A stretch of 64,000 nt of DNA from Macrostomum lignano. Lineage: Eukaryota. The stretch covers positions 170,559-234,558 of the forward strand of contig NIVC01001813.1 of NCBI GenBank assembly GCA_002269645.1. Reading direction: 5' to 3'. The first letter of the stretch is position 1. Each line of letters starts with the position of its first letter. Below, one piece after another: positions 12,350 to 64,000 of this stretch. The translations under genes and the position numbers were made by a program. The notes under the pieces were generated by a model. That model was not told the origin of the DNA, ran no database searches, and was given only the letters and a program-made list of their open reading frames with translations.

Positions 12350-12416
<67 letters not shown>

Positions 12417-21386: not shown

Positions 21387-21402
21387 GGCCCTGAAAAGGG
21401 CC
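21387..21402 (-). terminator. Histone mRNA 3' stem-loop of H3
   Basis: aaaacGGCCCTTTTCAGGGCCacca on the minus strand. Confidence 0.95.
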
Positions 21403-21485
21403 GTTTTAGCGTTCAATTCAAATTATGCTAGACTAGCATCTAATGATAAGCCGCGGATGAACTGCCTAATGAATTCAAAGGCAGC

Positions 21486-21920
<435 letters not shown>

Positions 21921-23612: not shown

Positions 23613-23628
23613 GGCCCTGAAAAGGGCC
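23613..23628 (-). terminator. Histone mRNA 3' stem-loop of H2A
   Basis: aaaacGGCCCTTTTCAGGGCCacca on the minus strand. Confidence 0.95.
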
Positions 23629-23732
23629 GTTTTAACGTTCTTAAGAGCGCAGCAATTACTTGCTGTCGCTGTCTGGCTGGGATCTAGCAAAAGATGCGCT
23701 CAGCCTTATAGCGTCCGTTATGCGTAGACTGT

Positions 23733-24146
<414 letters not shown>

Positions 24147-29095: not shown

Positions 29096-29168
<73 letters not shown>

Positions 29169-29195
29169 GGCAGACAGACAGACAGACAGACAGGC

Positions 29196-29252
<57 letters not shown>

Positions 29253-29255
29253 GGC

Positions 29256-29312
<57 letters not shown>

Positions 29313-29315
29313 GGC

Positions 29316-29352
<37 letters not shown>

Positions 29353-32300: not shown

Positions 32301-35283
32301 TTGCGAAGGGGAATGATTAGGAACCAACCGTTGCTAAGGGGAATGATTTGGAACCAACCGTTGCTAAGGGAATGATTTGGAACCAACCGTTGCTAAGGGG
32401 AATGATTTGGAACCAACCGTTGCTAAGGGGAATGCTCACTATCAACGGTTTGCTAAGATGCATAGCTTCGCTATCAACGGTTGCTAAGGACCATAGCTTC
32501 GCTATCAACGGTTGCTAAGGACCATAGCTTTGCTTTCAACGGTTGCCAAGGTGCAGTGCTCAGACTTACCAGGGCAGCGGGTGCTCGTCGCCAATCCGAA
32601 TGCCCAGGCCGTCAGTCAGCATGGCAACGGATTCGAATCCTTTGTTCTCCAGAGGCACATGCTCCGAAGGCACGGACTGCAGGTCGCTGCCACTGGTCTC
32701 GCCGTGGGATCTGCACTCGGACGGCGAAGGGAAGGCGCTGGCGTTAACCAGGTAGCGCAGAGCTTCGGGCAGGTCGATTCGGGCTACTTGGTGCACAGGC
32801 GGTCGGCGCGGCTGGCTGAAGTCCGCCACCGACGGCTGCGGGCTTGGCGAAGACGCCGAAGACGAGGCGGCGGCGGCGGTCGGTCGAGCGGCCGGCGACA
32901 AAGACGGATGCCGGGCAAGGTACTCATGGTAGGCGGCCTCTGAGGCTTTACGGGCCTGCGCAGATCCGGCAGAAAAAAATTTTCGGATTGCAAAACACTT
33001 GCTTACATACCAATGCTCGCTGGTAGTGGTCTAGGATACTACTGTCCTCTATTACTCATACTTGGGGGAGAGCTGCGCGAGGAGGGGAGAAGAGGGACGT
33101 TAGAGACAGGATTGGGAACATCGAGAGGAGGGGAGGGAGAGGAAAAGGAGGCAGATGAGGCAGATGAGGAAGAGGGGAGGATGGTAGAAGGGAGAGGATG
33201 GGGAGAAGGGAGAGGATGGGGATGAGAGAGAGGATGGGGGAGAGGGAGAGGAAGGAGAGGAGGGGGAGAGGATAGGGAGAAGGGAGAGGTGGGGAGAGGA
33301 GAGGAGAGAAGGTCCGCTCACCTGCAGAGGCGCAACCTCGCTGGCCGCGAGCTCCTTAGCCCTGGCCAGCGCCTCGGACCTCGCATGGAAGCGCTGGACG
33401 CGCGCCATCGCGGCGCCAACCTGACGGTTCTGCTGGCGCAGGCTGGATTCGAGGCCAAGCTGGCAGCGAACTGCGGCCGCTTTGCGCTGAGCGTCGGCGC
33501 GCAAAGCTAAAACGGCGCCGGCCGAAGGCGCCGCTTTGCTGGTGAGGCTGCTGTCGGACGGAGTCGCCTCAGGAAGCGACGGCTTCTCGGCTTTCCCAGA
33601 CTTTTTATCGCCAGTGGCTGGCTGCTGCTGCTGCTGTTTCTCCGCGGCCGGCGGCGAGCTCAGCGGCAAAGCCAGGGCGGACTGGAGAAAAAAGGCGAAC
33701 AAAATATTTCCATTTTTACTGACAGTAGAGCAGTGTGAAAACTTATCTATGACTGTCACAAATAGTAAATACACATTTAATAGACGAATTAAATAAACGG
33801 GAAAATGTGTTTTGTTCTACTGCAAGTAGACAGCATGGAGCATCACCTAATTTTAGAAAGACCGAAAATTCTCATTTTGCCTGTAGCTTTCAATAAAGGC
33901 TGCCAGGCTCACCTGATAAGCCCGCAGAGCGGCTGGAAAGTCGGCCAGCAGAGTCAGCACGTTGCCTAGCAACATGTAGGCCGCCTGGGAGCGCGAATTT
34001 ATAGCCAGAGCGGAGCGCAGCACAGTCAAAGCGTCGGAGTGGCGCTTAGCGGCGTGCAGGAGGCTGGCGAGGTTCAGCAGCACCGCGTCTCGGCTGTGGT
34101 GGCTGCAGCGACGGGGAGGCACTGGATGCACCGTGCTGACGAGTTTAGGCAGGCAGACAGACAGACAGGCAGACAGGCAGACAAACAGGCAGACAGACAG
34201 AGAAAGAGAGGCAGACAGACAGACAGACAGGCAGACGCACCTGGCAAGCCGCAGGGCCCGCAGCGCACACTCGGCAGCCCTGGGCGCGTCCCCCTTGATC
34301 CGCCAGTAGTAGCTGGCCATGTTGTGCAGGTGCCAGGAGCTGGCGTTGGCCGCCATGGCCTCCCCGATGAGGTGTCCGTATTGGTCCGGCGTCAGGCCGC
34401 CCGGCACGGCCGTCCGGTACAGGAAAATGTCGGGCGGAGCCTCCAATTCGGCGCGGTGGCGCACTGAGGCCACGTGCTCAAGCGAGTCCATTGAGAAGGG
34501 CAGCTCCATGGCAGCCTCGCAGTCGGGCACCTGGACAGGCCGGGAGGGAGGAAGGGCAGGGTGGATATGAAGGATACTCGACTGAGAAGGACAAGAACGA
34601 GACAGACACAAAACTCTGAAGATGAGACATAGAGAAAAGGCCAAAAAGACAAGCAAAAGAACCTTAAAGAAAACACATTGGGATGGGATCAAGTGCAAAG
34701 CGGGTGAGCCAGACAAGTAGGCAGACAAAAGTGCAAGGTGGGTCAGCCAGCCAGACAAGAAGGCAGACAAAAGTGCAAGTTCAGACAAAAGTGCAAGGTG
34801 GGAGGCGCACCAGCAGGCTGACGGCTCGCCAGGCTGTGTCGGGCTTGGCCCCCAGATCCAGGCCCGGGTCCAGGGGCACGGACACGAACAAGTCGAGATC
34901 TTGCAGCGGCTTCCCGGCGGCTACGCAGTCGGCGTTGCTCCGCTGAAACTGTTCAACAAAAGCGTCGTCCTTGGCCGGCATGGACTCCAGCGTGGCGTCG
35001 GACTCGGCCAGCTCGCGCTCCAGGCTGTCCAGCAGCTGCAGCCGCTCCCACTGGCGCAGCCACTCGGCCAGGTCGGCTGGCCGGCGCATGGACAGCCGGG
35101 ATTGCTCGGCCGGCAGCGGCTGCGGCAGGCCGCCATCTGGGGAGGCCACCCAGTGGGTTGAGGCCGATGCGGGCAGAGGATGAGGAGGCCAGACTGGCTG
35201 GATGAGCAGCAGCAGCAGCTGCACCAGGTACTGCAGTGGCTTTGACTGCTGCAGATTTAAGGATGGCAAAAATTTGGTTGCAT
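28032..35283 (-). CDS. TTC17: TTC17-like TPR protein, 9 exons: ~35283-34811, 34530-34241, 34102-33913, 33681-33322, 32955-32570, 32060-31527, 30621-30319, 29680-29387, 29067-28032
   Basis: STHWV, DCVAAGKPLQDLDLF, PDCEAAMELPFSM, SSWHLHNMASYYWRIKG..ECALRAL, DAVLLNLASLLH and WYPPDC match TTC17. All eight introns have GT-AG ends with compatible phases. The start needs a 1-nt homopolymer correction. Confidence 0.9.
29098..29352. repeat. (CAGA)n microsatellite intron of TTC17
   Basis: Fills intron 29386-29068. Confidence 0.95.
29880..30305. repeat. Minisatellite (ggacacagccgcccagctactcccc / ggacacagccgcacagatacccc) in a TTC17 intron
   Basis: Alternating related units visible. Confidence 0.9.
30758..30995 (+). 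mobile_element. tRNA-derived SINE with a V/Meta-type central domain
   Basis: A box tagctcagtgg, B box gagttcgattc, core tgtgtccttgagcaagacatttaa..cagctgtgaaatgggtgcc. A second copy lies at 47783-48024 (-). Confidence 0.85.
31010..31516. repeat. 24-bp minisatellite (acagcacaggtggttacacaggta) in a TTC17 intron
   Basis: Period 24. Source of the VTAQVVTQ ORF. Confidence 0.95.
32080..32545. repeat. 30-bp minisatellite (gaatgattaggaaccaaccgttgctaaggg) in a TTC17 intron
   Basis: Period 30 at 32221/32251. Grades into a related unit near the donor. Confidence 0.95.
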
Positions 35284-39810: not shown

Positions 39811-42795
39811 TTGTCGGCCTCCGTCATGGATCCTGCCTGCCGGCTAGCAAACGGCTGTCCTCCGGTCGATCCCCGTCGGTGCGGCGACCTCGTCGTGGCT
39901 GTCTGGGAGGAGCGTCTTCGTGGTGATCCGGACGAGAATTTCCTTGTCGACAGTCTTCGTGCTGGTTTTTCTTTAATCGACGACGGTTCTAAAGTGCCCG
40001 CCTTTGAGTCCGATAACTACCCGTCGGTGGAGGAGTTCAGACAGGAGGTCGAATGCCTGCTGCTTGAAGAAATTCGCAGGGGTAGAGTCGTGGTTGTGCC
40101 AGATCCGCCAAGCTTGGTGAGCCCGCTTGGGGCTATTCGCAAATCTTCTGGTGGCGTCAGACTCATTCACGACTGCTCCGTCCCCCATAATGCGTCTCTC
40201 AACGACTGTTTCACCGCCGACCGCAAGCTTCGTTTTGCGTCTGTCGAGGATTTCGTGCGTCTTCTTCGGCCAGGTCACTTCATGGCTAAAGTTGATATTG
40301 CCTCGGCGTATCGGTCCATTGCCTGCCACCCCAGCTGCTGGCCTCTTCTTGGTCTGAAGTTCAAGTTTTCCGGCGACGATCACGTTACTTACATGCAAGA
40401 CCGACGCCTTCCCATGTGTGCTGCCGGCTCTGTTCCTAGATTTCACCGTGTCTCTCAAGCCATTCATCGCTTCATGGTCAAGGACGGCTATACCGCTGTT
40501 GTCAACTATCTGGATGACTTTGCTGTCACTGCCGCTACCTACAGAGATTGCTTCAAGGCCTATGATCACCTGCTAAGTCTTCTGGAGCACCTTGGCTTCG
40601 AGGTCAACCGCAAAAAGTGCACCCCGCCTTGTCAGGACATGGTCTTCCTTGGTGTTCGTATCCAGACGGACATCGGAGTCATGTCTCTGCCTCCGGAAAA
40701 GCTGCATGAGCTGCGTCAGTTGCTCACTGACTGTCTTGCCGCTAGACAAGTCTCTGCTTCCTTCTTGCGTCGCCTCACCGGAAAGTTGAGCTGGTTTTGC
40801 CAGGTGCAGAGACAAATTCGCATGTTCCTTCGCCCCATCATCGAGTTTACCGAGAGGCTTAGTCGTGAAAATCGTCGAGTGCGCATTCGCGAGAGTTTGC
40901 GGCATCTTCTCCAATGGTGGGAATCGGCCGTCAAGTGTTACCACGATCGTCTCATCTGGCCCATCTTCTCCGACGCCTTGGCCGTGGAAACTGACGCCTG
41001 CATCAGTGGCGGCGCTGCCATTCTCAGCAGTTGCTGCTTCCGCGATTGGTTTTTCGTTGATTTTTCCTCGGACTTAGACGGCCGTTTTGCTGATCTGCAC
41101 ATCAATTACAAGGAGGCGGCTATCGCTCCTCTCACTCTGCTGCGGTTTCGTGACCAGCTTCATCAGGCCCAGGTGGTCTTCTACAGCGACAACCAAGCAG
41201 CTGTCGGCATGCTTAACCGTGGCTCTGCTAAGTGTCCCATCGTGAATGACCTTCTGATGCAGGCTGGGTTTGTCTGCATGCAGCAGCAGATCACTTTTAA
41301 GGTCTTTTACATGCCCGGTTGCCGCCAGTTCCTCGCTGACCCCGCCTCTCGTCTGCTGACGGGAGACGCTGCTCTGATTGATTTTGCCTCTCGTTTCTAC
41401 GGTCATTTGTTGATTGATCCCTCTGAATTTGCTTCGCATGCGCTGGGTCCTGCTTCCGCTTCCACCCTGTTTTTCAGGTGCCGCCTCCTTTGGGCTGCCA
41501 ATCGAGCTGCTCCCTCTGGTTCGCGCCGCCTTCGCACCGGCGACGCTGCGGTCGCTGGAAAGCAAATGGAGGACGTGGCGCGCTTTCTGCAGCGAGGCAA
41601 AGATCAACGCTCTGAAGCCGACTCCAACTCAGATTTGCCAATTCATCAACTTCCTCATGCACCATCGCTTGTCGCGACAATCGAGCCTGCAGGCATACGT
41701 CAGCTCGATCTCCACTCTGTTGCGACTCAGCGACTCTCCGGTTACGACAGACTCTGGACTCGTGCGCTTGGCTCTTCGAGGTGCGAAGCGGCTGCTGGCC
41801 GTAACGCCTGCTCGCCGCAAGGCTGCGCTGGGGCCGAGTCATCTTCTGCGACTGCGGCGCTGCCTACAGCTGCAGACCGGCCTTGGAGCTGCTCTGTGGA
41901 GCCTCATCTTAGCCGGCTGGTGGGCGATGCTGCGGGCGGCCAATCTCTGCTCTGTCAGCCGGGCAAACGTCGGCACGGCGGTGCTGATCAGCGATCTTCG
42001 GCTGGGCGTCAAGGAGGCTCGGATTTTTGTTCGCCTGTCCAAGACGAATCAATTCGGCGAGCGCCGCCATGTCGTTCTTCTGCCCTGCATCTGCAAGAGT
42101 GCGACTGCTCCGCTGTGTCCGCTTTGTGCGCTCCATCATCATTTCAGCCGGAACTCACTAGACATTGCACCTCCTTCGCAGCCTCTGTTCTCGACCCTGC
42201 AGTCAGCAGGAAGCTGGATGAGCTTAACTGCAGCGCATGTCCGGCGCGAGTTGTCCCAGCTTTTTCACCAGGCTGGCCTTCCGAGAGACCGCTTTTCAAT
42301 GCACAGCCTGCGCCGAGGCGGCGCCAGCTTTGCCAGGCGTTCAGGCATCGCGATCGAGGATATCAAAGCCATTGGCGACTGGAAGAGCGATGCGGTTCAT
42401 CTCTATGCGGGCCAGCAGCCGCAGGTGGCCAGCCGTGCTGTTTGTCGCATCGGGGCGGCGGTGAAGGCTGCGTTCTAACCGTTTGGCTGTTTAACTTTGT
42501 CGGTGCTGGCGTTAACTTCTCCGTTCTTGAAGTTTCCCCTGTGTTTTTCTTTTACTCCTGTCTCCGTTTCTGTCCGTTCTCCGGTTTGGGTTTGGAGGTT
42601 CCGTTTCGCGCCAACCCTTGTCTTGCCTCGTTCCTTTCCCCGCGGTGTAATGTTACCCTTGCCACTGTGTTGGTGGTAAGGGCGTTTATACTGCGGGGGG
42701 AGGTGGCTCGCTGGGCTGGGGCGGGTGCGTGCGGGGTTGCGTGTGCTGCGGGGGGCGGGGGTGTCGTGTGGGTGGTAGCTCGTTTTCATATTTAG
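39811..42795 (+). CDS. Reverse transcriptase/RNase H ORF2; recognisable domains end ~41400
   Basis: VRLIHDCS, KVDIASAYR, NYLDDF, FLGVRI. RH motifs ETDAC, HINYKE, YSDNQ, LADPASR. Confidence 0.9.
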   Translation: MSASVMDPACRLANGCPPVDPRRCGDLVVAVWEERLRGDPDENFLVDSLRAGFSLIDDGSKVPAFESDNYPSVEEFRQEVECLLLEEIRRGRVVVVPDPPSLVSPLGAIRKSSGGVRLIHDCSVPHNASLNDCFTADRKLRFASVEDFVRLLRPGHFMAKVDIASAYRSIACHPSCWPLLGLKFKFSGDDHVTYMQDRRLPMCAAGSVPRFHRVSQAIHRFMVKDGYTAVVNYLDDFAVTAATYRDCFKAYDHLLSLLEHLGFEVNRKKCTPPCQDMVFLGVRIQTDIGVMSLPPEKLHELRQLLTDCLAARQVSASFLRRLTGKLSWFCQVQRQIRMFLRPIIEFTERLSRENRRVRIRESLRHLLQWWESAVKCYHDRLIWPIFSDALAVETDACISGGAAILSSCCFRDWFFVDFSSDLDGRFADLHINYKEAAIAPLTLLRFRDQLHQAQVVFYSDNQAAVGMLNRGSAKCPIVNDLLMQAGFVCMQQQITFKVFYMPGCRQFLADPASRLLTGDAALIDFASRFYGHLLIDPSEFASHALGPASASTLFFRCRLLWAANRAAPSGSRRLRTGDAAVAGKQMEDVARFLQRGKDQRSEADSNSDLPIHQLPHAPSLVATIEPAGIRQLDLHSVATQRLSGYDRLWTRALGSSRCEAAAGRNACSPQGCAGAESSSATAALPTAADRPWSCSVEPHLSRLVGDAAGGQSLLCQPGKRRHGGADQRSSAGRQGGSDFCSPVQDESIRRAPPCRSSALHLQECDCSAVSALCAPSSFQPELTRHCTSFAASVLDPAVSRKLDELNCSACPARVVPAFSPGWPSERPLFNAQPAPRRRQLCQAFRHRDRGYQSHWRLEERCGSSLCGPAAAGGQPCCLSHRGGGEGCVLTVWLFNFVGAGVNFSVLEVSPVFFFYSCLRFCPFSGLGLEVPFRANPCLASFLSPRCNVTLATVLVVRAFILRGEVARWAGAGACGVACAAGGGGVVWVVARFHI
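41414..42478 (+). CDS. Tyrosine recombinase ORF3
   Basis: Catalytic set: LRAANL (R), SKTNQ (K), HSLRRGGA (H-x-x-R), GDWKSDAVHLY (W, Y). Confidence 0.92.
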   Translation: MIPLNLLRMRWVLLPLPPCFSGAASFGLPIELLPLVRAAFAPATLRSLESKWRTWRAFCSEAKINALKPTPTQICQFINFLMHHRLSRQSSLQAYVSSISTLLRLSDSPVTTDSGLVRLALRGAKRLLAVTPARRKAALGPSHLLRLRRCLQLQTGLGAALWSLILAGWWAMLRAANLCSVSRANVGTAVLISDLRLGVKEARIFVRLSKTNQFGERRHVVLLPCICKSATAPLCPLCALHHHFSRNSLDIAPPSQPLFSTLQSAGSWMSLTAAHVRRELSQLFHQAGLPRDRFSMHSLRRGGASFARRSGIAIEDIKAIGDWKSDAVHLYAGQQPQVASRAVCRIGAAVKAAF

Positions 42796-44505: not shown

Positions 44506-47097
44506 TTATTGCTTACGGTATCGTCCAAAGAAGCTGCTGTCAGAGTTCTGCTTCTGTTGCTGCTCTTCCTGCTGCTGTTGCTGCTGCTGAACTTCTTCAT
44601 CAATTCGCAGGTTCAAGCTCTCCCTCAGCTTGGTGCAGTCCGCTTTGTACTTCTCCTTTTCTGCTCTCTCTTGGGCGAAGTCTCGCTCATAGTCTTTTAA
44701 GGTTGACTGCAGCAGATTTTTTGTATCCTCATTTTGTTTCAGCTCCTGCTGAGCCTCCTCAAGCTTCGCCTGCAGCTGGGTCAGCCTGGTCTCAAGTCTC
44801 TTGCATTCGTCGTTCTTGCGACAAATATCCTGCTGCAGCTCTCGGTCCCCCTGCTCCAGCTGGTCCAAACGGCGCTGCCGCTGTTCCAAGCACTCGCGCA
44901 TTCGTTCAGCGGTGCTGAGGGCCGAGTCTCGCTGCTGCTGCGCCTGCTGCACCTGCTCCGCGGTGGACTTGCGCTCCGAGTCCAGCGACGCGCGCAGCTG
45001 GCGGATCTGCTCGTCAGCTACCGACCGAGACTGGAAGTGGGAGGGATGGGAGAGATGTAGGACCATTTTTGTAATTAATGTTTTCCTTGATCCACTTGGG
45101 CCCATTCGTTCCCATGCTATCTTTCGAGGCATCCTTGTGCATCCAAGCTACACCAAGCCAAGTCTCAATTTATCATCACCTGCTCCGCCTCCTTTCTCTT
45201 CCATGTCTCCTCATTCATTCTTTGATAGAGCCGCTCCTCTCGCTGTTTGAGCTCGGCAACGCGACCGTCGTGCTCATCGGCCTGAGCCCTATGCCGATCC
45301 AGCAGCTCGTCAACTCTCGCTCGGTAATTATTCTCCTGCAAATGTTGCAGCAGAGAGCAATGAAGTATCTAGGACTTAACTATGCAGTTAATTGATGCTC
45401 CCTAAGAGTCCTCAGTCAAGAAGCCACCTACGCTTGTGCATGCGCATGTACTTAGAAGCCTAAGTTGTCGAAGTTAACGAACACCGTCAACCACCTTACC
45501 CTCTCCTGGCAAGCCGACAGCTCTTGCTGCTTGTCAGCAAGTTCCCTCTCGGCTGCAGACAACTTCCGCTGCTTATCTGCCAGTGAATCTTCTGCAACCG
45601 ACAGCTTCCGCCGATTATCTGCCAGTGCTTCTTCGGCGGAAGACAGCTTCCGTTGCTTATCTGCCAGTGCTTCTTCGGCAGAAGACAGCTTCTGCTGCAA
45701 ATTTGCTTCCGTCTCGGCCAGTTTTTTCTGCAGCCTTCTATCCGACTGTTCCATTTCTTCCAACTTCTTCTGAACTTCAGTCAGCGACTTTCGCAGCGCC
45801 TCCTCGGTGCTTTGTTGCGTGTCCAGCTCTCGCTGCAGCCGTTGGACCTCCTGGCTGGTGGAGGCGGCTCTATCCGATGCCTGCTTCAGCTGCTCCTTAC
45901 AGGCGCTGAGCTTGGCCGCCTTGGTGTCCGCCTCCTTCCGAGCCATGCCCAGCTCGATTGCCTGGCTTTCCTTGGCTTTGCTGTAAAAAAATTGAGATGA
46001 GTTTTAGGTGGACACTTCAGGAACGCTGCTTTAAATAATCAGACTGTAAATAAATCGATGATACGGTAGATTGTGTCAAACCGTGCATCCTCACCTCAGC
46101 AGATTTCGCTCCTCTTTCAGCTCGGCCTCTAGTTTGAGTATCCGATGTTTCAGCCTATCTGACTCGCTACTGCTCTGCTCTCGCCTGCGGGAAACGGGTG
46201 GCTCAATTTTCAGCAATGTTCCGGACATGGTCAGAAATATAGGACTTGAGTAATAAAAAATTCCCAAAAGAGCTGAGCACCCACTGCGTGTTTCGCTCGG
46301 CATTGAATTGTTCCTGCAGCTGCTCCAAGCGCAGGTTCAGCACCACGACTTTGCGATTTGCATCGGCGAGTCTTTGAAAAGGGTGTCGATATATTATGGA
46401 ACGTTTAATCGTTATAAAATATTTGATCACACATAAAACAAGAGTAAAAACAAAAATGCCCCACTCACTGCTTCTGGAGGTCATCATTCGTCGCCTTCAA
46501 CGCACGAAGCTCTTCGCTCCCGAGCGCAGCTGGAGCTCCTGCTGATGGACGCGCTTCCACTTTTGGCTCGAGCGCACTTTCACCTTGGGAAGAATCTGAC
46601 AGGAGCTCGTGCAGGAGGTCTTCGATATGTAAATCATAATCTGACTTTGTCTTTTCTAGCTGATGCTCGGCCTCAGCCAGCTTCTGATTGAGCTGCTCCA
46701 ACTCTGCCGCGTGTTTTGCCTTCAAATCGTTCTCGGACTTCAGGTTGAAAGCGCAGATGGCGTCCATCTGCTTCTTGCACGTCTGCTTCTCCGTTGCCAG
46801 CGCCTTCTCATGCTGCTCCACCAGAGCCGCGCCGTCAGCTTGGTGGGAGCTTTGAAGCTGCTCAATTTCAACTCTGTGCTTTTCCTGCTCAGCAGACAGA
46901 TCTTCTTTAAACTGAGCGCTCAATTCGTCTCTCTGCTTTTCTAGGGCCTCTGCATGCTGACGTTTGAGCTCGGCGATCTCCAGCTTCTGCTGCTCAACTA
47001 CCGCTTCTTGAGTTCGGTTTCGCTCTTCCAGCCTAGCTTTTTCTGCTTTAAAATTCTTTAGCTGAGCAGCCAACTGTTGAATTGGATTGGCAGTCAT
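44506..47097 (-). CDS. Multi-exon long coiled-coil protein of unknown identity, including 14-aa repeats LADKQRKLS(S/A)AEEA
   Basis: Heptad-rich E/K/Q/L/A open segments with GT-AG boundaries (e.g. 47097-46469, 46371-46281). No recognisable globular domain. Confidence 0.65.
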
Positions 47098-48443: not shown

Positions 48444-50424
48444 ATGAGTGAGTAGATTCCATACTAGCTATCAAATGCTGGCAAAGTTTGGGATGCATAT
48501 ATCATCAATCTGCCTTTTAACACATCAGCATTATGCAAAACTTCGTATTAAATGCCTCAATAATAACTAAACTGAACCTTCAGCAATTTACCTGGTTGCC
48601 AATGGTAAATCGAAGAGTGACTTCAAAGACCTGCAGGATCATCTAATCAGGGAGAAGCTAACCATTAGCATTGAAAGATCGTGGCCAGAAAGTGCAGAGC
48701 AATGGATGGAGCTGCTGGAAGACGTCAAAGCCAGAGAGGACAACCTGCTGGTGTTGATCTTTAACAGAGCTCCGGACAGTGAGAGTAATTTGACCAGAAT
48801 CTGCAGCTTTGTCATGGACTTGGCAAGTTCATTCAATTGCGTTTACAATGCATATTCGTTTTGCTGTGCACAGCATCAACCCGACTGGTTGAATCAACGC
48901 TCTGCTTTTTAGTGTGTGGAACTTCGAAGCTGCAGAGTTTACCTGGTTAAACAATTCAAAGACTGTGGCAAAAATGCCTTCAAAGTGAACAGACGAGCTA
49001 GGAAAATGCTGCAGTACCTTGACCTGGAGGCTGAGAGTGGAAGCTATCTCAGATTGGTCGAAGCTATTAAAAAAGGTAAGAATTACGACTTCCTCGGAGA
49101 TTAAAATTAGGAGAAAAGGCGATATGGGAGAACGGGTTTCTATTTTCACTTGCACAGGTCCTGGCAGCTTCAGCAGTCGCGGGGAGAGCTTTGCCTGGCA
49201 GCTGGTGACCGGATTTCTCTGCCACATCCTGCCGCTCCTTTCCCAGCGGGTCAGCAGTCAGCTGGCCGATAAAGCGGGCACCGCTCTGCCGGAGGCTTTA
49301 CGAAGATTCAATGCAAAAGGCGTGGATGCCAGACGGGTTCTCGTTGTGCCAAAGTACTTTCTGCTGCTCAGCAAACCGGTTGCTTGCGGCCAGAAACAGG
49401 CGGAACTGTGCCCCGATCAGCTGTTCCCCGGCTGCCAGAAAATCAGCGACTGGTCGTCCGAGCTGGAGTTTGACAGTCCCGGATTCAAGAAGCGAATTCC
49501 GGTGTACCTGACCGAGCTGAGAGAGCCACTGCCAAGCGGACACACCCACGCCATGATCTTCTGCGGATTTGCCGCGCCCATCTTCATCATGCGGCAGCTG
49601 GAGCTCAGCAAAAATGAGCGGGGAGAAATATTTGACGACTTCGTATGCGAACTGAGTTACATTCTGAGTCACCCAAGCTCAAGCCAGCTGCTCTGTGACT
49701 TGGGTGGAGCAGCCACGGGGGCCACGGGCTCGGAGTCCTCGACAGTCAGCCTGATAGAGCTGGCCGGCACGGGCGGTGATTCCATAAGAAATGAAGTTTT
49801 GGAACGAATCGACGAGTACTTGGAGAAGCGGGACTGGGATGCTTGCGACGATTTAAGAGACGAATGGGTCCTCGTTACTTCTTTGATGAATTTATTCGTA
49901 AAATTCAGCTCATCCTTCACAACCGAAGTAAAGAGCTCTGTCCGCAACTGGCTTTCAAGACTTGGCTTCAGAACTAACGAAACTGCGGTTGACTCGCCAC
50001 TGCTTCCGAGCCAGAGAGTTCTGCTACTGCTGCATATCCAAGATCTCGAGTCAAATGACGAGCGTATGCACACCCAAATTCGGCATGCTGTTGAGAATGT
50101 AGGCAGCTCAGTTCAAGCTGAAATGTCACGTTGACAACCCAATTAGACCTTTCGCTTGGCTGATGCTCTCGAGCTTTAACTTTTCAGATGCATCGCAGTG
50201 ATTGCCAAAACATTTTCGTCATCATAGAGACAGCTCCAGGAGAGCACCAGGCTGCCTTCAAGTCCCTGCCGAACATTCTGCGGTGCCTTCCTGACAAATG
50301 CACAGCCGCGGTGACCGGCTTGAAACAGCTGAGCTCGCTGAAGTTTTCGTTCCCTGATGGAACTCAACGCCTGGCAGGGTTTAGCGATCTGATCAAAGCT
50401 TTTAGTAAGATTTTAAACTTCTAG
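48444..50424 (+). CDS. TIR-STING-TIR protein; proposed exons 48444-48447, 48584-48822 (or 48840), 48913-49075, 49158-50098, 50188-50424
   Basis: STING CBD motifs GESFAWQLVTGFLCHILPLLSQRV, RRVLVVP, GFKKRIPVYLTEL and CGFAAPIFIMRQLELSKNERGEIFDDFVCELSYIL. The flanking alpha/beta segments show TIR-like strand/helix order. Splice phases are compatible. Confidence in STING is higher than in the TIR calls. Confidence 0.78.
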
Positions 50425-50427
50425 GAA

Positions 50428-50580
50428 TCCAGGGGCTTTAGCACCAGGGGCTTTAGCACCAGGGGCTTTAGCACCAGGGGCTTTAGCACCAGGGGCTTTA
50501 GCACCAGGGGCTTTAGCACCAGGGGCTTTAGCACCAGGGGCTTTAGCACCAGGGGCTTTAGCACCAGGGGCGCCAGCACC
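50428..50580. repeat. 15-bp tandem repeat (caggggctttagcac)x~10, directly after the STING-gene stop
   Basis: Near-perfect copies. Confidence 0.95.
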
Positions 50581-51334
50581 AAAGTAGTTGTTGGGGAACT
50601 GCTAAAATTTATAGCCAGTTTTTCGCCTGTCTTTCTGGGGAGTGGAGGCCCCTCTTGGTGCCTTGGCAACGCCCATGAGATCTGTTGATGAGCATTAAGA
50701 CCTTAAGGCATTCCATTTCAGAGCTGGACTCGAAACCGGACTGTGCAGATGAATGTCTGCCTCTGACTTCCATGAGCTTCGCAATGGCGGCCAACTGTTG
50801 GTTCGGCTTTGCGAATCGATTGCTGCAGAGTGAGTTGAAACTTAATAATAATATTCATCAAATACACTCGCAATAATAAGAATAGTAATAATAATTATTA
50901 TTATTCGATTTAAGATGCAAATTTCGGGTCTCAAGGCCATTAAGTCTTGAGTCAATGGGCAAAACACATTGTCCTCTGAGTAAGATTTTTTTAAAATCGA
51001 AACTTTATACGATATTTCCTGATCAAACTTGTCACGGGAGCACTAGGAAATTTCCCGCTGCACTTAAAAAGGAACTGAACTTCACTTTCTACCCCGCATG
51101 GCATTTCGGGCAGGTCTTCTTCTTCTCGTAAGGGATCTTTGGTCTCGCAGTCCTTGTTTCGCTAATCTAAGCGGTGACAGGGTGCGATTTAATTCTGGAT
51201 TGGAAATTTCCAGGGCATACCTTTTGACTGAGTTGCATCAGTAGTATAGAATAAGGACAGAATTAAGTCTTGAACTCAGTTTAATTAAATTCTAAAGTCA
51301 GCATATGTTGAATATAGCTCGTACGGTGTGGCAC

Positions 51335-51810
51335 TGCCTCCGGCCTGCCCCACCCCGCCTCCGGCCTGCCCCACCCTGCCTCCGGCCTGTCTCATCCTGC
51401 CTCCGCGGCCTGCCCCACCCTGCCTCCGGCCTGTCTCATCCTGCCTCCGGCCTGTCCCACCTTGCCTCCGGCCTGTCTCATCCTGCCTGCCTCCGGCCTG
51501 CCCCACCCTGACTCCGGCCTGTCCCACCCTGCCTCCGGCCTGTCTCATCCTGCCTCCGGCCTGTCCCACCCTGCCTCCGGCCTGTCCCACCCTGCCTCCG
51601 GCCTGTCCCACCCTGCCTCCGGCCTGTCCCACCCTGCCTCCGGCCTGTCCCACCCTGCCTCCGGCCTGCCCCACCCTGCCTCCGGCCTGTCTCATCCTGC
51701 TTGCCTCCGGCCTGCCCCACCCCGCCTCCAGCCTGTCCCACCCCGCCTCCAGCCTGTCCCACCCCGCCTCCAGCCTGTCCCACCCCGCCTCCAGCCTGTC
51801 CCACCCCGCC
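51335..51810. repeat. 21-bp minisatellite (ccaccctgcctccggcctgtc), probably intronic
   Basis: Tandem copies visible. Confidence 0.95.
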
Positions 51811-51843
51811 TTCAGGGCCTCCCTCTCACTGATTGGCCAGTAG

Positions 51844-52407
51844 ACAATCAGCGACGTGGGCCAGACCCCACCATTTTCCTACGTTTATTTCGATTTTGGT
51901 AAGCTTAAATATTTACGGCCAGCATGCCCAATAATTCCAGGCATGAACGCCAGCACCGGCCGAAATTCAAAGCCGATGTTCGATCCGCCCTACTGCTTTG
52001 TGATCCCATCAAGCGGCCGGTTTCCCGACGAAAACCAACTCTACGATCAACTGTACAGCATTGGCGTCCGCTGGAGCGTTTCGGAATTCCGGCTGGAAGG
52101 CAGACGCTTCACATTTCGCGTGCACCGATGGGGCGACGTCAGCATTGCATTCGAAGTGCCCGCGTCGGTGCTGTCGATACATCGACAGGCCGACAGTCGC
52201 ATCGGCGGCGTCCGAGCGAAGAGTTTGAGCAGCCAGCTGGCCGAGTTCGGCGCAGAGCTGGACAAGTACTGCGCAAATAGCGGCGGCTGGTTTCGAGTGA
52301 TTCGGTGGGATGACAGCGTCTTGAGAGTTGGCGCAGAATGCCCCGACTTGAGCCGGGTAGAAAGTCTAATGAGCTGCCTGGGAGAAGCGTGCAGTATCCG
52401 CCCGTGA
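51844..52407 (+). CDS. Hypothetical protein exon(s), no recognised domain
   Basis: GC-rich non-repetitive ORF with a phase-1 GT-AG intron 51899-51940 that keeps frame. Possible first exon 51305-51325. Confidence 0.4.
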   Translation, partial: TISDVGQTPPFSYVYFDFGKLKYLRPACPIIPGMNASTGRNSKPMFDPPYCFVIPSSGRFPDENQLYDQLYSIGVRWSVSEFRLEGRRFTFRVHRWGDVSIAFEVPASVLSIHRQADSRIGGVRAKSLSSQLAEFGAELDKYCANSGGWFRVIRWDDSVLRVGAECPDLSRVESLMSCLGEACSIRP

Positions 52408-52534: not shown

Positions 52535-52945
52535 AGCATCAAACCGCATCCCGTTTCTCACCCCGTTTCTCACCCCGTTTCTCAATCCGTTTCTCATCCC
52601 GTTTCTCATCCCGTTTCTCATCCCGTTTCTCATCCCGTTTCTCATCCCGTTTCTCATCCCGTTTCTTAACCCGTATCTCAACCCGTATCTCACCCCGTAT
52701 CTCATCCCGTATCTCATCCCGTTTCTCAATCCGTTTCTCATCCCGTTTCTCATCCCGTTTCTCATCCCGTTTCTCATCCCGTTTCTCATCCCGTTTCTCA
52801 TCCCGTTTCTCAACCCGTTTCTCATCCCGTTTCTCATCCCGTTTCTCATCCCGTTTCTCAACCCGTATCTCAACCCGTATCTCACCCCGTATCTCACCCC
52901 GTATCTCATCCCGTATCTCATCCCGTTTCTCAACCCGTATCTCAT
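52535..52945. repeat. 12-bp minisatellite (ttctcatcccgt)
   Basis: More than 30 copies. Confidence 0.95.
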
Positions 52946-55151: not shown

Positions 55152-56790
55152 ATGCGGCGCACCTTCATTTGGATCTTCGCCTGGCTCTGCATCAGAACTG
55201 TGGAAGACGCCGGAGCTGTTTCTGTTGACTCGGCCCAGAAGCGCTTTGTCCTGAGTGAGAACTCGATTGTACTCGGAGATCGGGTGAGCAGCTTCTTGGT
55301 CTCCATCACGATGACTCTGGGCCTTCAATGCTTCGCCGAATGCGCCAGGCTGGGCTGCGCAGCCGTCAAGATGAGCGTCGCAGCGGGACGGTGCGAGCTG
55401 CTGCTGTTGCACGACGCTTCGAAGCCGGGCCGAGCAGAGCTGGCTGGCACTTTCAAGCACCGGACACTGAGCGTGGAGACCGGCTGGCTGCTGTGGAAGA
55501 CGGCCGACTTTGAGGAGCTGCTGAAGCTCAGTACCTTTCCACGACTGTTGGTTGTCAATCGTGAGTACTTCAAACATTTGAGATTTTTAGGGTTTTCTAT
55601 TTCGAACCGTCAGTGAGTAGCCTCTGCCTATCTGTGAACTTGGAGCTCTACTACAATGATACATGTCCCTGTACCGGTGGCTTTCATTGTTACACATCCG
55701 GGGATAGTTCCGAGTTCGGGTTTTTCAAGCTCACCAGTCGCTACCCCGCTTATAATGACCCTAAGGTCGTGCCCCAAATCAGTTGATCTATCTAATAACA
55801 AGTAAGATTTCTGCATCAAAAAGCAAGTTCGCCATGCTACTGTCCGCAGCCTCACCTGGAAATGGATCAATCGAGAGCTTTCTGGTGCCGATCGCTGCCT
55901 GCTACCGAATCGAGGCCCGAGGTGGCAGGGGCGGTTCCACCTATCCAGGGAGGAGTCTCTTCACCGGCGGCAGAGGGGCCTTCATGGCAGGCACGTTTAA
56001 CCTCACTGCCGGCTCCAGGCTCTCCATTGTTGTCGGACGGCGGGGCGGCGATGCGTCTCAGAACGAAGACTTCGCCGGCTCAGGCGGCGGCGGCGGCTCG
56101 TTTGTGTACGCGGAGGGAGCCGGCATGCCGCTGCTTGTGGCAGGAGGGGGCGGCGGTGGCAATAAAGACTCTGAAGGTTGGTGTCTTCTGTTATGCTACA
56201 TGTACCGGCTGACCCGCGCATCAATTCCTGTCTAATAGCTTCCAGTTGTGCCATTTTGATGACCCAAAAGGTCCCGCTATCGAGATAAAGACACTGTTCT
56301 ACGCTTTTAATGCTTGACAGGTAAACCCGGCAGAAATGGAACCAGCGGCAGCATGTCAGCAGCGGAGTATGAGGAGCAAAACGGCTTCGGCGGCTCTGAT
56401 GGATATCCGGGCTTCTTAGGCCCCAGTTTCGTCCCGGAGGGTTCAGCTAACTTTGGTGGAATGGGAGCCGGCTGGTTCGGCAAGGCAAACGGTACTGGAG
56501 GAGTTAGGGATGGCGGACCTGGTGGCAGCCGGCTTGACGGCTGGGTTGGCGGGACCGGAGGCGCCATCGGTGGATTCGGTGGCGGTGGGGGCGGTGGGGA
56601 GTCTCCCGGCGCCAGTGGCGGCGGCGGAGGCTTCAGCGGTGGCGGTGCGGGTTTCGGTGGTGCTTGCGGCGGCGGCGGCGGAGGCTCCTACTGCGGCGGC
56701 AGCGACTGCGTCGGAGTGACCGGTGGCAACACGGAAGGGGAGCACGGCTCGGTTGCCATGGAGATTCTGCTCGGCGCTGTTTGCAATTGA
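55152..56790 (+). CDS. Secreted PAN/apple-like plus ALK/LTK-type glycine-rich domain protein; exons 55152-55560, 55850-56176, 56321-56790
   Basis: Signal peptide, CFAECARLGCAAV..GRCELL, VPIAACYRIEARGGRGG..GGRGA..GTFNL..IVVG..GGGGGSFV..LLVAGGGGG, terminal GSVAMEIL. Both introns are phase 1. Confidence 0.8.
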
Positions 56791-58687: not shown

Positions 58688-61600
58688 ATGCCTGCCTTGC
58701 TAGTCAGCATCGGCCCTTTGCTTGTCTTCGCTTTGACAGCTTTCGCCTCCAACTGCTCTCCGGCTTGCGTGAATGGGGCCTGCAACGCTGATGGGACCTG
58801 CGTCTGTCCCACCGACACGTTTCTGACATTTACGGACACCAAGTGTGACAGTGAGTGGCTTACACCACGGCCTACATTTAAAGGAGCTTAGATTATGTAT
58901 TACTACGCTCGTATTTCTGAAAACTTTAAAAGAACTACTCGTGTTACGTTTTTTAACTAACGCAAACTCCTTTGAAACTAGCAGAAAGCGTCTTTGAAAA
59001 CAAGCATTTAATATCATCGGTTTGGGATGCACTGGAAAAGAGTCGTCAAACCATTAATTCCATCAGCAGTCATCGATCTTTTCAAGCCATACACAGGCAT
59101 ACACAGTTAATGTTCATAATATTAATGATTAAAGAGACATAAAAATGCTAATTTATTCAAATTAATTCCAGATGTGAGCACAATTTCTGCTGGAGGTGTC
59201 GTCAGTAAGCTTGCACAGAGCAATACAACTTTTCTGCAGTCGCAGCAGGTCAACTTTGCTGACACCGTGTTCCAGGGCGGGTTCCCCATTGGAGAGGGTG
59301 TCATTGCCACCGCTCTCTTCGTAAGTACTTTTTGCAACACGAATGACAGCTGAATATGGCAGTAACTCTTTGATTTGATTAGATTTTTTGTTTATATTTT
59401 AAAGGACTAATCAATAAAACAAAACTCGAACCTGATCAGATCTGCTCAAACGGCTACGTGACATTCGACAGCAACTACTGCACAAGCAGAATCGATTTGC
59501 TGCGGCACTCTGTCGCGCCCTCATTTATCGCCCCATTTGCGACCAGCTTCGACTATCGCAGCGCTGTCGGTGCTGTCTCCACAGAGTCAAGCGTCACCTA
59601 CGAGCTGGTTCCGAGCATCGATGCCGTGCCGCGTCTGAGCCAGATGCGCGCCAACATCAGCGACCTGGCGAACACCACATCGGCCATTGTGATCACTTGG
59701 GACAAAATGTCGCCACCGACGCTGGAGTATAGCAAAACTGTGCAGCAGGTTTGTTTCGTGGTTTATTTTGCTGTTTGAATTTCAGTAAATAAGCTTGATA
59801 CGGACTAATTGCATTAATGGAGATCATCGCTCAAAATGGGTTCATTTCAGATCACCATGCAGCTGATAATCTTCACAGACATGCGGAAGGTCACAGTTGC
59901 TGCGATGCTTTACTCGGGCAACACGCTAAAGCACTACTTCAACTGGGTGCCCACCCTGGTTGCTTGGAAAACTGGTGGCAACTTGGTCACCCTGGCAAGC
60001 ACTCGCAGTACAGCCATGGCTTATGCCAACCAGACTGTCAACTATAACCGTGAGTTTTACGCTAAATCAAGGGTTCTCAAGGTTAAGCCAGCCAAAGGGT
60101 TAAATTAGTCTGTAATAGTTGTATTGTTTAACAAGTAAAAAGTTAAATCTTGTACCCGCAGCTGTGAAGACTCGGATTCGAATCCTGCCAATCTACCTGA
60201 ACAACAGCGCGCCGGTGAACTACGCCGCGATGTGCAGCCGAGAAGCGACAACCCCCCTGCCCGTCACACCGTCCTCTTCCGTGGCCAACGCCTGTCCGCA
60301 GACGCAGCAGCAAGCCAGGTCTGACCCGCGGTACACCAAGGACGCCGCCACTGTTACGGGCAAGCAGCCATACAAGCTGCTGCTGACAGCTAACCTGGAC
60401 AATGTAACGCAATTGACTTGCGTGTACCATAATGACAGCGGCGGCCTCCTGGTGCAGGACTCGTCCATCAAGGTGGTCAGCAAGAATGTCACTTTGGGGG
60501 TGAACCTGTTCGACTACTGCTGCAACCGGGCGCCCGCTCTGTGCAACCTCTACTATAACAAATTTTCACAGCCTTCGTCAATCGGTTATGGTGCTCCCGG
60601 ATCCGCAGGTTAGCGTGACAGGAGGCCAGTTTCAACTGCACCCTTTAAATGAATTGGGAAGCTAACATAGTAACAAACAGAAGCAAAGTGCACACTTAGA
60701 ATGTATATAAAAGCAGGCTTAAGGTTTCATAGAGATCACCTAAACTGCCCTCATTCAGGCTTTGTCACTGGCGCCGGTCTATTCCGAACCTTCGATAACT
60801 ATCAGTACAAATTCTTGGCCATCGGAGACTTCTGGCTGGTGAATAACGCAGGCTTAAAAGTACAGGTTCGGATGGAGAATTTGAACACGCCAAGTGCCAA
60901 CAACACAGCGGGCGTCACCTCTGTGGCTGCGCAGTTCACTGGAGCAACAAACTTTTCTATCGAGGTGCGTCTGTCTTGTAGTTTGCTGCTCATGAATATA
61001 GCTAAGTTGTATCCATGCGTTCCAGCCTTCCCAGCAACAATTTCAGGTGTACCGAGACAAATCCGTAGCCAAAATTAGCACTGCGCATTACAGCATCAAC
61101 CAAGGTCCATTTACTCGTAAAAATCTCACAGGCAGCAGTGCTGTGCAGACGGAAGTTCTGAGCAACGGTAACAGTTTTAGAGCACAGCTCTGGAATAATT
61201 TGACCCTTTGCCTGTCGGTCCTTTACATGTTTTCTAGATAATATTTGCAAGAAACGAATGCTTAGCTACTCACAAATGTGTTGTTTCCAGTGGCAATTAT
61301 CAGCAGCAGCAATAAGATTATTTGCTACACAAGCAACTCCAACAGCTGGATCGAAGTGAGTCCAGTATCTGATGGCTTTCTGGGTTGGATAAATGCGCAG
61401 TGTGTTTGCAAGTTCAAAGCCCAACCTGATGAATTTCAGATTTCAACTGCTCCAAACGGACTCACAGTCACGGTATTTCTCAACAAGTCGCCAGGAAACG
61501 TTGCTGGATTGCTGGGAAACAATGATGCCAACAGCCAGAACGAGGTGGCTTACCGGAACGGAACCGCGCTGTCTGTGGCGCAACAGGCGACTCTGACGCT

Positions 61601-64000
61601 GTTTACGGAAGCCATGACTACCTGTGAGCATTTTGCAACCATAGTACGTTCGTACAGCGTAAGCTAGAAGTACAGGCATGAAAGTGGACATCTTTAGTTC
61701 TTTCTAATAGCTTTGCCGGTTCCAAAATAGTCGTAGGAAAATGACAGTCATACTTAAAAATATAACCCATTATTAATATATTGATTAGTGCCTCTGTGAG
61801 CCCAGTGCCAAAAAGTAAAAGTACATATGTCTGAATTCCATTTCCGTATAATATTGTACCACTACACTACTAAATCGAATTACTGATTATTACCAGCGTA
61901 CACTGCTAAAGAAGGAAGTTCAACTTGCAGAAACTCAAGACTGCTTCAAGAGTCTCAAAATCTAGAGATTTAAAGTGCTGCTAACTTTTGACCACAAATC
62001 CAGGGGCCGTAGCGCCGACTGGCGAATCCCTGTTTCTGAACTCGTCGACCCCGCCAACAGCTGCCACTAACTGGACGCCGCTCTATTGGAATGCTGCTTG
62101 GAACACCAACCAGACGGCGCTGATTGAGGCACTCTTTCTTCGGCAACGAGACAGTCTACAACGCCTCAGTGGCGGCTTGCTCTGCCAAGCTCAGCAACAC
62201 AACCGAGTACCGGTACTGCATACTCGAGTTTGTTGACTGCAAACTGCAGGCCTCGTGCTCAGAAGCTTACCTTACTCGCCTAGACTCTCTGGTTGTGCAG
62301 CTCAAAGACCTCTCCTGCTTGCCACCGCAGTGGAACGCAACTTCCACTCCGTTCAATGTTAAAGAAGGCGACATCTTCAAAATGGAGCTTGCGACGGTGG
62401 TAGATGGCGGCAGTTCTGGCCGAACTTTTTCAAAGATTTCAGGACCAGTTGGACTAAACGTGTATGAGAACGGCAGTTTTGACCTGGGTGCCAGCTCAGA
62501 GCGAAATCTCAGCGCTGATCGTGCTGAGGTTGCTGACGTGGCCAGCGGCTGCGCCAGTCTCTCTGGCCGGTGCCGCTCAGATGACCAGACGGAACGGCCT
62601 GTGTCCGCCAACGCTGCTGAAAGTTTTGCGACTCCATTGGCCTCGGGAATCGCCATCACGCCTCAGAGTGAGTAGGCAGTCAATAGTGTCAGACGCAATT
62701 GACTGCAACTGCAAGTTGTGTCTACTGCAAGTAGACACAAAATGAGTGTCAGTTTTCAATGTCCCATTCGATCTCTATTAACATTTTTGGTGTCTTTTTA
62801 TATCAATAATTTTAGACCAGGCTTCCATGTCTGCCTGCGAATGCAGCCAAAATTATTACGGCCCTAACTGCACTTTCGCAACCTGTCCGTTAAACTGCTT
62901 TGCGTGCAATACCACCCTAGCAACAAGCTGCTCTTCCACCTGTCCCGCAAACTACGACCTGTCCACATCCGGCAGTCTGACCATCTGTGCCTACAGAGAC
63001 CGATGCGACAATTCCGCGTGCACAGGCGCTGCCTACACCGGGTGCATCAGTGCCGACCCAGCAATACAAACCGAATTCTACAAGCACCAGTGCATCTGCG
63101 CGACTGGCTTTCAGTACCCGCTCAGCAATCTGGCGAATAAGACTCGATGCGAGGGTGCGTAGCGAGAAAATTAGTTTTACTGCAACTATTAGCTGTCCTA
63201 TTCAATATTAGCTTTGATTTCAACATTTTAGATATCAACGAGTGTCTGCTGCCAACGCATTGTGACACCAGCAAAAACAGAACTTGCAACAACACTGCGC
63301 CGGGCTTCAGCTGCCCTTGCAGCGATGGATTTGAGCCTGTGGATGCAGGCTGCACAACAGGGACATGCAGCTGCAAGGACATCAATGAGTGCTCAAAAAA
63401 TTCCAGCATCTGCTCGAACGGCAACTGCACCAACACCATCGGGTCGTACCGGTGCGAATGTTCGACTGGCTTCTACGCAGAGACATCGCGCAAGTGCTCG
63501 GACATCGACGAGTGCGCCAACCCGGCAACCAGCAAGTGCACACACGACTGCACCAACACGCCGGGAGGCTTTAATTGCACCTGCAAAAACGGTTTCGCTC
63601 ATCCGAGCAGCGATCCGGTGGCTTGTGTTGCCCAAAGAACTGCACGAGCAATACTTGCGCGTACAAGAGCATGTGCGCCAAAGTCGGTGACGCGGACACG
63701 TGCTACTGCTTGCCAAAGCAGACTCTGTCCGGAACGGCATGCAATCGTAAGTGATTCTTAGCAAAACGGTGCTTGGATTCAGGTGTATCTTTTCAGAGCT
63801 TAGGTCCAAAAACGGAATGGTGTTTAGACTTAAATTAACTCTCACAAATCCGCAAATTCTACTTTTAGCCGCATCTTACTGCACAGCCGCTACCTGTGGC
63901 GCGGCGGCAACTGCACAGACGTCGGCGAGCCCTCCACCGGCTACAGCTGTGTCTGTGGCGAGCACTACGAGAAAAATAGCCTCGGCACGTGCGTCAGTGA
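58688..64000 (+). CDS. MUC4/SUSD2-like extracellular protein (signal-EGF-NIDO-AMOP-like-VWD-EGF/cbEGF), multi-exon, truncated at the window end
   Basis: NIDO: FIAPF..ITWDKM..FQ..IFTD. AMOP-like: FDYCC..LCNLYY. VWD: TGAGLFRTFDNYQYKF..GDF and GLLGNNDANSQNE. cbEGF: DINEC repeats. Confidence 0.8.

Follow-up and report, generated by a model that had tools for sequence, protein, structure and literature searches.

A divergent soluble protein of the flatworm Macrostomum lignano with two predicted TIR-like/STING modules in tandem

The window analyzed here is a 64,000-nucleotide stretch of the Macrostomum lignano genome (contig NIVC01001813.1, positions 170,559 to 234,558 of the forward strand). It contains the gene BOX15_Mlig018577g1, which spans window positions 48444-52407 on the plus strand and encodes, in seven exons, a product of 712 amino acids. 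We consider it probable that this product is a soluble receptor for cyclic dinucleotides composed of four domains (N, D1, M and D2), arranged as two TIR-like/STING modules in tandem. What the data support is a lineage-specific, highly divergent flatworm variant of the soluble TIR-STING type, in which each chain has two STING-type domains. A preliminary description, made from the DNA letters alone, had placed the end of the gene at 50424 and had read it as one STING domain between two TIR-like domains, in a host that it suspected of being a flatworm. The host is indeed a flatworm, but the gene runs on into a second STING fold, so that the order is TIR-like, STING, TIR-like, STING; the sandwich reading arose because the gene model was truncated.

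Splicing of the seven exons from the window yields a translation that is 100% identical to the GenBank protein PAA63807.1 (UniProt A0A267ESF9; P0125 in our set), which is labeled in GenBank as 'hypothetical protein BOX15_Mlig018577g1'. The contig segment retrieved for this protein (NIVC01001813.1, assembly GCA_002269645.1) matches window positions 38444-62407 exactly. The region is eukaryotic and has short GT-AG introns, and three-frame translation recovered all of the peptide stretches quoted previously in the frames given for them. The previously proposed junctions from 48447/48448 to 48584 (the acceptor ends at 48583), from 49075 to 49158 and from 50098 to 50188 match PAA63807.1. The junction between exons 2 and 3, however, uses a GC donor (TTG/GCAAGT at 48822/48823, with the acceptor before 48913) and not the GT donor that had been implied, which is the reason that no good GT donor fits after exon 2. 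The stop codon at 50422-50424 belongs to intron 5 and is met only when the exon 5 donor is read through, whereas the real stop is at 52405-52407. Thus, the locus is a real M. lignano gene whose right-hand boundary had been set short by 2 kb. Its parts are listed below, with a slash marking exon-intron boundaries within motifs.

Exon 1, coding part: 48444-48447, plus strand; ATG plus one base, donor GTGAGT (ATGA/GTGAGT at 48447/48448).
Exon 2: 48584-48822, plus strand; first part of the N domain, amino acids 2-81, TIYLVANGKSKSDF...LLVLIFN...SFVMDL; GC donor GCAAGT.
Exon 3: 48913-49075, plus strand; second part of the N domain, amino acids 82-135, CVELRSCRVYLVKQF...YLRLVEAIKK.
Exon 4: 49158-50098, plus strand; D1 in the 5' part, then a connector and the first half of M; donor 50098/GTAGGC.
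Exon 4, 5' part: 49158-49837, plus strand; D1, amino acids 136-362, divergent STING ligand-binding domain.
Exon 4, 3' part: 49838-50098, plus strand; short acidic connector DACDDLRDE, then the first half of M with the LFVKFS strand, a helix, the RVLLLLH strand, the conserved DLE and helix αC.
Exon 5: 50188-50404, plus strand; second half of M, NIFVIIE...LPNILRCLP...LKFSF...FSDLIKAF; donor TTTA/GTAAGA at 50404/50405.
Intron 5: 50405-50721, plus strand; holds a perfect tandem repeat of 15 bp x 9.5 at 50429-50571.
Exon 6: 50722-50829, plus strand; connector plus D2 helix α1 (LPLTSMSFAMAANCWFGFANRLLQ), helix 180-204 of the structure model.
Intron 6: 50830-51940, plus strand; 1111 bp, with a tandem array of 21 bp x 22 at 51334-51811.
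Exon 7: 51941-52407, plus strand; the rest of D2, YCFVIPSSGRFPDE, with the lid EGRRFTF, IAFEVPAS and WFRVIRWDD; stop TGA at 52405-52407.

The gene is part of a small family that evolves fast and was detected only in M. lignano. We searched 1.84 billion representative proteins exhaustively with HMMER, using exon 4 (D1 and part of M) as the query, a design that relatives carrying D2 only could escape. Three matches were obtained, and all of them, together with their cluster members, are from this species. A word-indexed homologue search gave no match with exon 4 and only the near-identical P0001 with the family alignment. The three representatives, P0001 (97-99% identical to the window protein), P0002 (582 amino acids) and P0003 (927 amino acids), align end to end, and the paralogue search suggested in the preliminary description is thereby answered with two M. 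lignano types, P0002 and P0003. Family layouts consist of N once (twice in P0003), D1, an optional M (absent in P0002) and D2, giving N-D1-D2 for P0002, where D2 directly follows D1, and N-N-D1-M-D2 for P0003. D1 and D2 co-occur in this order in every full-length family member, and D2 is 34-41% identical across both paralogue types.

A cluster of paralogues is found on contig NIVC01000486.1 (positions 10001-13266, 17305-17544 and 20011-21973 of the locus L001), where the P0003 gene and a P0002-type gene are 6.7 kb apart. Between them lies a D2-like fragment, probably left over from a pseudogene, with 67% identity to residues 807-890 of P0003. In the P0002-type gene, D1, the connector and D2 helix α1 form one uninterrupted open reading frame (ORF), and D2 is therefore not a separate gene; the intron that follows D2 helix α1 occupies the same position as intron 6 in the window. 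Within the window, tblastn found no paralogue besides the locus described here. A protein of 393 amino acids with N and D1 only (P0124) occurs on two other contigs and may be a truncated copy or an incomplete model. The automatic UniProt names of P0124, P0001, P0126 and P0129 conflict with one another (STING, Death domain-containing, SEFIR domain-containing, RWD domain-containing and Uncharacterized); the SEFIR and Death domain names sit on near-identical copies and the RWD name on the paralogue fragment P0129. This scatter suggests borderline automatic matches.

The first STING-type domain, D1, comprises helix α1 (SFAWQLVTGFLCHILP), a lid region (FDSPGFKKRIP), the motif CGFAAP as the counterpart of human LEYATP, and a last strand and helix (VSLIEL...SIRNEVLERIDEYL). 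We compared it by hhalign with an alignment of 18 deuterostome STINGs (vertebrates and one hemichordate) that had been retrieved with the human ligand-binding domain. Based on local alignment, the E-value is 0.0026 over 135 columns, and based on global alignment, 4.4e-5 over 173 columns with 25% identity, the whole domain being collinear. In column-shuffle controls the observed scores correspond to z = 8.6 (local) and z = 10.8 (global), and none of 60 shuffles attained the observed score. When a three-sequence D1 profile was run against PDB sequences, 61 matches were obtained at E ≤ 10, and all 60 of those listed are STING, the best being Nematostella STING (E = 0.037). The stretch at about 49745-49837 had been taken for an acidic helical linker, but in the global alignment it coincides with the last strand and the C-terminal helix of the STING ligand-binding domain. 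D1 thus begins, as previously proposed, at 49158, and from these profile comparisons we conclude that it is genuinely homologous to the ligand-binding domain of metazoan STING, though divergent. The automatic UniProt name of P0124, 'Stimulator of interferon genes protein', is on a copy in which D1 is the only STING-type domain. Of the residues that contact the ligand in human STING, the α1 aromatic is kept in D1 (F at human Y167), and the α1 motif A-W-Q...G-F-L...L-P is invariant within the family. The counterpart of the lid arginine R238 is kept in two of the three paralogues.

The second module consists of M (amino acids ~371-521) and D2 (amino acids 522-712). Both were modeled jointly with AlphaFold2 from a three-sequence alignment, using P0001 residues 346-698. 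The mean predicted local distance difference test score (pLDDT) is 58, with values of 60-85 in D2. Elements in the D2 model follow the STING order: long α1, strand, helix, β-hairpin, strand, two helices, strand, helix. When the M-D2 model was compared with the PDB by Foldseek, 48 entries matched at E ≤ 0.001, and each of these is STING or TIR-STING, with a probability of 1.00. Full-length TIR-STING proteins take the first five ranks, namely the oyster TIR-STING 6WT7 (E = 4.7e-8, 369 aligned columns), followed at ranks 2-5 by the bacterial TIR-STING 9LMQ/9LMR (E from about 2e-6 to 9e-6, 348-358 columns). STING-only chains, such as those of Nematostella and human, reach 1e-5 or weaker over about 180-190 columns, with template-modeling (TM) scores by target of 0.55-0.61. 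STING-only chains from the same sources as the best matches score two to four orders of magnitude worse (8YDN, 3.5e-4; 6WT5, 5.4e-4), and the M part therefore adds positive score against TIR. D2 is accordingly modeled, and predicted here, as a second and very divergent STING fold.

M is predicted to alternate strands and helices (βA LSVKFS, αA, βB, βC RVLLLLH, αC, βD IFVIIE, αD, βE). In the joint model, the alignment of M plus D2 extends from end to end of oyster and bacterial TIR-STING, which partly supports a TIR-like fold placed directly N-terminal to a STING domain as in those proteins; other flavodoxin-like folds might align with TIR-STING in the same way. The 'SEFIR domain-containing' name that UniProt assigns automatically to a 97-99% identical copy is a weak pointer in the same direction. 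In D2, the candidate counterparts of the contact residues are F551 (in an invariant G-F) for Y167, R613 (in EGRRFTF, invariant) for R238, and F615 (F/Y/Y in the family) for Y240, as read from an alignment that is not significant by sequence. These three contacts, one aromatic in α1 plus an arginine and an aromatic in the lid, have been described as common to all known bacterial and metazoan STINGs (Li et al., PMC9980059).

The N domain (amino acids 1-135) shows the alternation of hydrophobic strands and amphipathic helices of a (βα)5 pattern (IYLVA / TISIE / LLVLIF / RVYLVKQ / YLDLE), and the same pattern recurs in the paralogues, including the N region of P0002. This pattern suggests an α/β domain of flavodoxin- or TIR-like type. 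We call it TIR-like by analogy with the M-D2 arrangement.

No transmembrane segment was identified in the 712-residue protein. The highest Kyte-Doolittle mean over 19 residues is 1.46, within the core of D1, and no window reaches 1.6; the same holds for both paralogue types, which likewise lack any 19-residue window at or above 1.6. The four N-terminal transmembrane helices of canonical STING (TMEM173) are accordingly missing from the window protein and from both paralogue types, and the membrane-less character proposed at the outset stands. We also considered whether D1 and D2 are a detectable internal duplication, and rejected this, as neither BLASTP nor hhalign detected a relation between them. 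No relation between N and M was detected by hhalign.

Several observations weigh against a tandem TIR-STING receptor. Pfam was searched with each exon and with the complete protein; for PADLOC and NCBIfam the queries were the three family representatives, P0001 standing in for the window protein. No domain attains a threshold in any of the three collections. Pfam STING_LBD (PF15009, gathering threshold 27 bits) has no match at E ≤ 10 to the window protein or its parts, and a sub-threshold match to the paralogue P0003 (18.5 bits, E = 0.0014) is restricted to helix α1. The comparison with STING and TIR profiles that the preliminary description had recommended is thus split, as the Pfam thresholds for both are missed but the profile-profile match of D1 is significant. 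The recommended structural comparison with oyster TIR-STING is split as well, with a strong match for M and D2 but a weak D1 model. The AlphaFold2 model of D1, also from three sequences, has a pLDDT of 47; it shows the order of STING elements, and the top 24 Foldseek matches are STING chains, yet at E ≥ 0.016 and TM scores of about 0.2. Exon 4 and D2 each gave no phmmer match against the PDB. Among D1 contacts, the lid arginine is T in one paralogue, and residues corresponding to human S162, R232, Y240, E260 and T263 are replaced by Q, S, P/T, G and A/P, respectively. For D2, the hhalign comparison with STING is not significant (E = 0.05 local, 0.26 global; shuffle z = 2.3 and 1.2), although its 107-column alignment is collinear from the first strand to the last. 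The D2 profile has no STING among its matches to PDB sequences, and the predicted assignment of D2 rests on one AlphaFold2 model from three sequences. In M the pLDDT is about 50-60, and Pfam and PADLOC contain no TIR, TIR_2 or SEFIR match to it at E ≤ 10. N has no TIR or SEFIR signal in the Pfam, PADLOC or PDB-profile searches, and there is no TIR among the PDB profile matches for M or N. Finally, in the predicted αC of M no glutamate is kept between the two paralogues that have M. The window protein has E at two αC positions where P0003 has N and T, the model being too weak to place an active site, and the D-L-E motif just before αC is the only element shared by these two paralogues.

These points bear on four other explanations. 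The most far-reaching, that the resemblance is due to chance and that D1 and D2 are both unrelated to STING, would account for the absence of curated matches and for single E-values against PDB sequences that are marginal (0.037 or weaker). We regard it as extremely improbable given the shuffle controls and the collinearity of D1 over its full length, the exclusively STING matches among the 60 listed for its profile, and the Foldseek results for D2. It is also highly improbable that gene prediction wrongly fused a neighboring N-D1-M gene with a separate D2 gene. Such a fusion might be suspected because intron 6 is long (1.1 kb) and rich in tandem repeats and because the public model P0124 comprises N and D1 only. 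Against it, exon 6 has no suitably placed start codon and is phase-matched on both sides, D1 and D2 helix α1 share one uninterrupted ORF in the paralogue, and P0002-type proteins have D2 straight after D1 with no M at all. A three-domain TIR-STING-TIR protein that ends at 50424 is very unlikely for related reasons. Read-through of the exon 5 donor does give an in-frame stop, and an isoform that retains the intron is conceivable. However, a strong donor (TTTA/GTAAGA, at 50404) precedes that stop, exons 5, 6 and 7 are mutually phase-compatible, exons 6 and 7 are contained in PAA63807.1 and in three further public predictions, and in both paralogue types a conserved D2 always follows D1, with D1 and the beginning of D2 sharing one ORF in a paralogue.

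The explanation that competes most closely with a tandem receptor keeps the same architecture and gives it another role. The STING folds would then be degenerate, would not bind cyclic dinucleotides, and would act as oligomerization or scaffold modules or sense another ligand. The extreme divergence of the family, the lack of a Pfam match, a D2 that is undetectable by sequence, the loss of most pocket-floor and lid contacts in D1 and the restriction of the family to M. lignano all fit such a pseudo-receptor, as does the report that most flatworms lack cGAS-like receptors other than Mab21 proteins (PMC9980059). On the other side, D2 appears to keep the three contacts described as universal, invariant or conservatively replaced across paralogues, the D1 α1 motif is invariant in the family, and at least one cGAS-like protein of M. 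lignano is in the construct table of a published screen. We take a pseudo-receptor to be possible but doubtful, and a receptor for cyclic dinucleotides to be the probable function.

TIR-STING proteins are considered rare in eukaryotes, and that of the oyster is considered of animal origin (PMC10732462). The Crassostrea gigas TIR-STING (6WT7/6WT6) is the closest solved relative, being the best Foldseek match over both M and D2. Both hosts are spiralian (lophotrochozoan), and the oyster protein is likewise soluble, lacks a transmembrane domain and has a TIR-type α/β domain directly N-terminal to its STING domain. The flatworm protein differs in its low sequence identity (about 13%), in domains that fall below the Pfam TIR and STING thresholds, in the additional N-D1 module in front, and in the domain orientation of the model (root-mean-square deviation of about 14 Å, global TM score 0.34-0.36). 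Ligand binding has been demonstrated for the oyster protein, whereas for the flatworm protein it is predicted. The preliminary description knew of no published sandwich architecture; oyster STINGs whose annotation lists two STING and two TIR domains are, however, already on record (PMC11103948). Provided that N is TIR-like, these share with the flatworm protein two STING-type and two TIR-type domains and the lack of transmembrane helices, a likeness in domain inventory. In contrast to the flatworm domains, those of the oyster are recognized by standard signatures. The flatworm paralogues also vary in layout (N-D1-D2 and N-N-D1-M-D2), and the two STING halves of the flatworm protein are unrelated to each other by hhalign.

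The TIR-STING of Sphingobacterium faecium (9LMQ/9LMR class), from an antiphage signaling system based on cyclic oligonucleotides (CBASS), has the same TIR-STING order and fold. It consists of one module where the flatworm protein has two, and the α1 motif of flatworm D1 is of metazoan and not of bacterial type. The bacterial TIR has a catalytic αC glutamate and proven NAD+-cleaving activity, whereas flatworm M has no αC glutamate kept between paralogues. With canonical animal STING (TMEM173) the flatworm protein shares sequence homology of D1 over the whole ligand-binding domain and the predicted fold of D2. It differs in having no transmembrane helices, two ligand-binding-type domains per chain and partly replaced pocket residues in D1, and by eye there is no apparent counterpart of the C-terminal tail that recruits TBK1 and IRF3 in vertebrates.

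In bacterial TIR-STING, ligand binding closes the lid and exposes STING-STING surfaces, which leads to filament formation and to packing and activation of the TIR domains (PMC9402430). By analogy, we infer that the flatworm protein would act as a soluble receptor in the cytosol whose ligands are cyclic dinucleotides produced by the cGAS-like enzymes of the worm. Li et al. (PMC9980059) list at least one cGAS-like protein of M. lignano, PAA86972.1, among the constructs in their supplement, and it is a plausible source of the signal. D2 would be the better-preserved ligand-binding half, favored because its α1 aromatic, lid arginine and lid aromatic appear to be kept, with D1 as its partly degenerate partner. 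Once bound, the ligand would induce STING-STING oligomerization, which would bring the TIR-like domains together and start signaling. D1 may pair with D2 in cis, or each may pair with its counterpart in a second chain. The TIR-like output could be a scaffold or NAD+ cleavage, and the αC sequences of the M paralogues, which keep no common glutamate, lean to the scaffold role. The idea that TIR surfaces are presented at both ends of a STING filament has no basis, as it does not follow from the order TIR-like, STING, TIR-like, STING.

A more specific arrangement, a 'single-chain STING', can be envisaged, in which D1 and D2 pair within one polypeptide. The pocket would then be asymmetric and pseudo-heterodimeric, with a canonical lid from D2 and a degenerate lid from D1, and could be suited to a nucleotide signal, asymmetric or unusual, that the cGAS-like enzymes of the worm itself produce. 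We consider this arrangement unlikely.

Neither annotated neighbor of the gene is an obvious immune-signaling partner. Upstream, at 44506-47097 (minus strand), is a gene for a 655-residue protein rich in Gln and Glu that appears coiled coil-like by eye and matches no Pfam family. Downstream, at 58688-62236 (plus strand), is a gene for a 691-residue NIDO/VWD protein. A scan of the window that was not exhaustive found no cGAS-like gene among the scanned ORFs or the annotated neighbors. A third tandem array (12 bp x 33) lies at 52547-52945, 140 bp 3' of the stop codon. All three arrays, in intron 5, in intron 6 and 3' of the gene, generate long spurious ORFs on both strands. Glycine-rich ORFs (GGRGGS... 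and GGGGGG runs) occur at 55783-56790 (plus strand), between the gene and the NIDO/VWD gene. An ORF of 994 residues at 39811-42795 (plus strand), with a reverse-transcriptase domain (Pfam RVT_1, E = 3.4e-7), marks a retroelement about 5.6 kb upstream of the gene; the overlapping ORF at 41414-42478 has no Pfam match. Farther upstream, two GC-rich ORFs (~60% GC) on the minus strand, at 28035-29384 and 33856-34788, encode tetratricopeptide repeats (TPR_12, E = 6e-7) and are probably exons of one gene. A histone H2A gene for 126 residues and, just downstream of it, a histone 3' untranslated region stem-loop lie on the minus strand (23589-23633 and 23733-24113); the stem-loop is the sole Rfam match within the window (34.4 bits).

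The protein is not a new kind of system: GenBank already contains the gene, UniProt's automatic naming calls some copies STING, and the oyster class with doubled domains is on record. In the literature we found no paper that describes a Macrostomum STING. The loss of STING in flatworms, to which the preliminary description had alluded, is indeed published, as an early survey concluded that cGAS and STING had both disappeared from flatworms (Wu et al., PMC4117786). At least M. lignano, an early-branching flatworm, keeps genes for STING folds, and as in molluscs these folds occur in soluble proteins together with TIR-like domains. The axis from cGAS-like receptor to STING thereby becomes testable in a transgenic flatworm amenable to RNA interference. 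The family also provides a very divergent data point for the question of whether the TIR-STING fusions of spiralians arose by inheritance or by convergence. Because two dissimilar STING-type domains are invariably paired within a chain, one may ask how STING dimers can evolve, and a single-chain STING, if it is real, would occur in a phylum that has been described as having lost STING.

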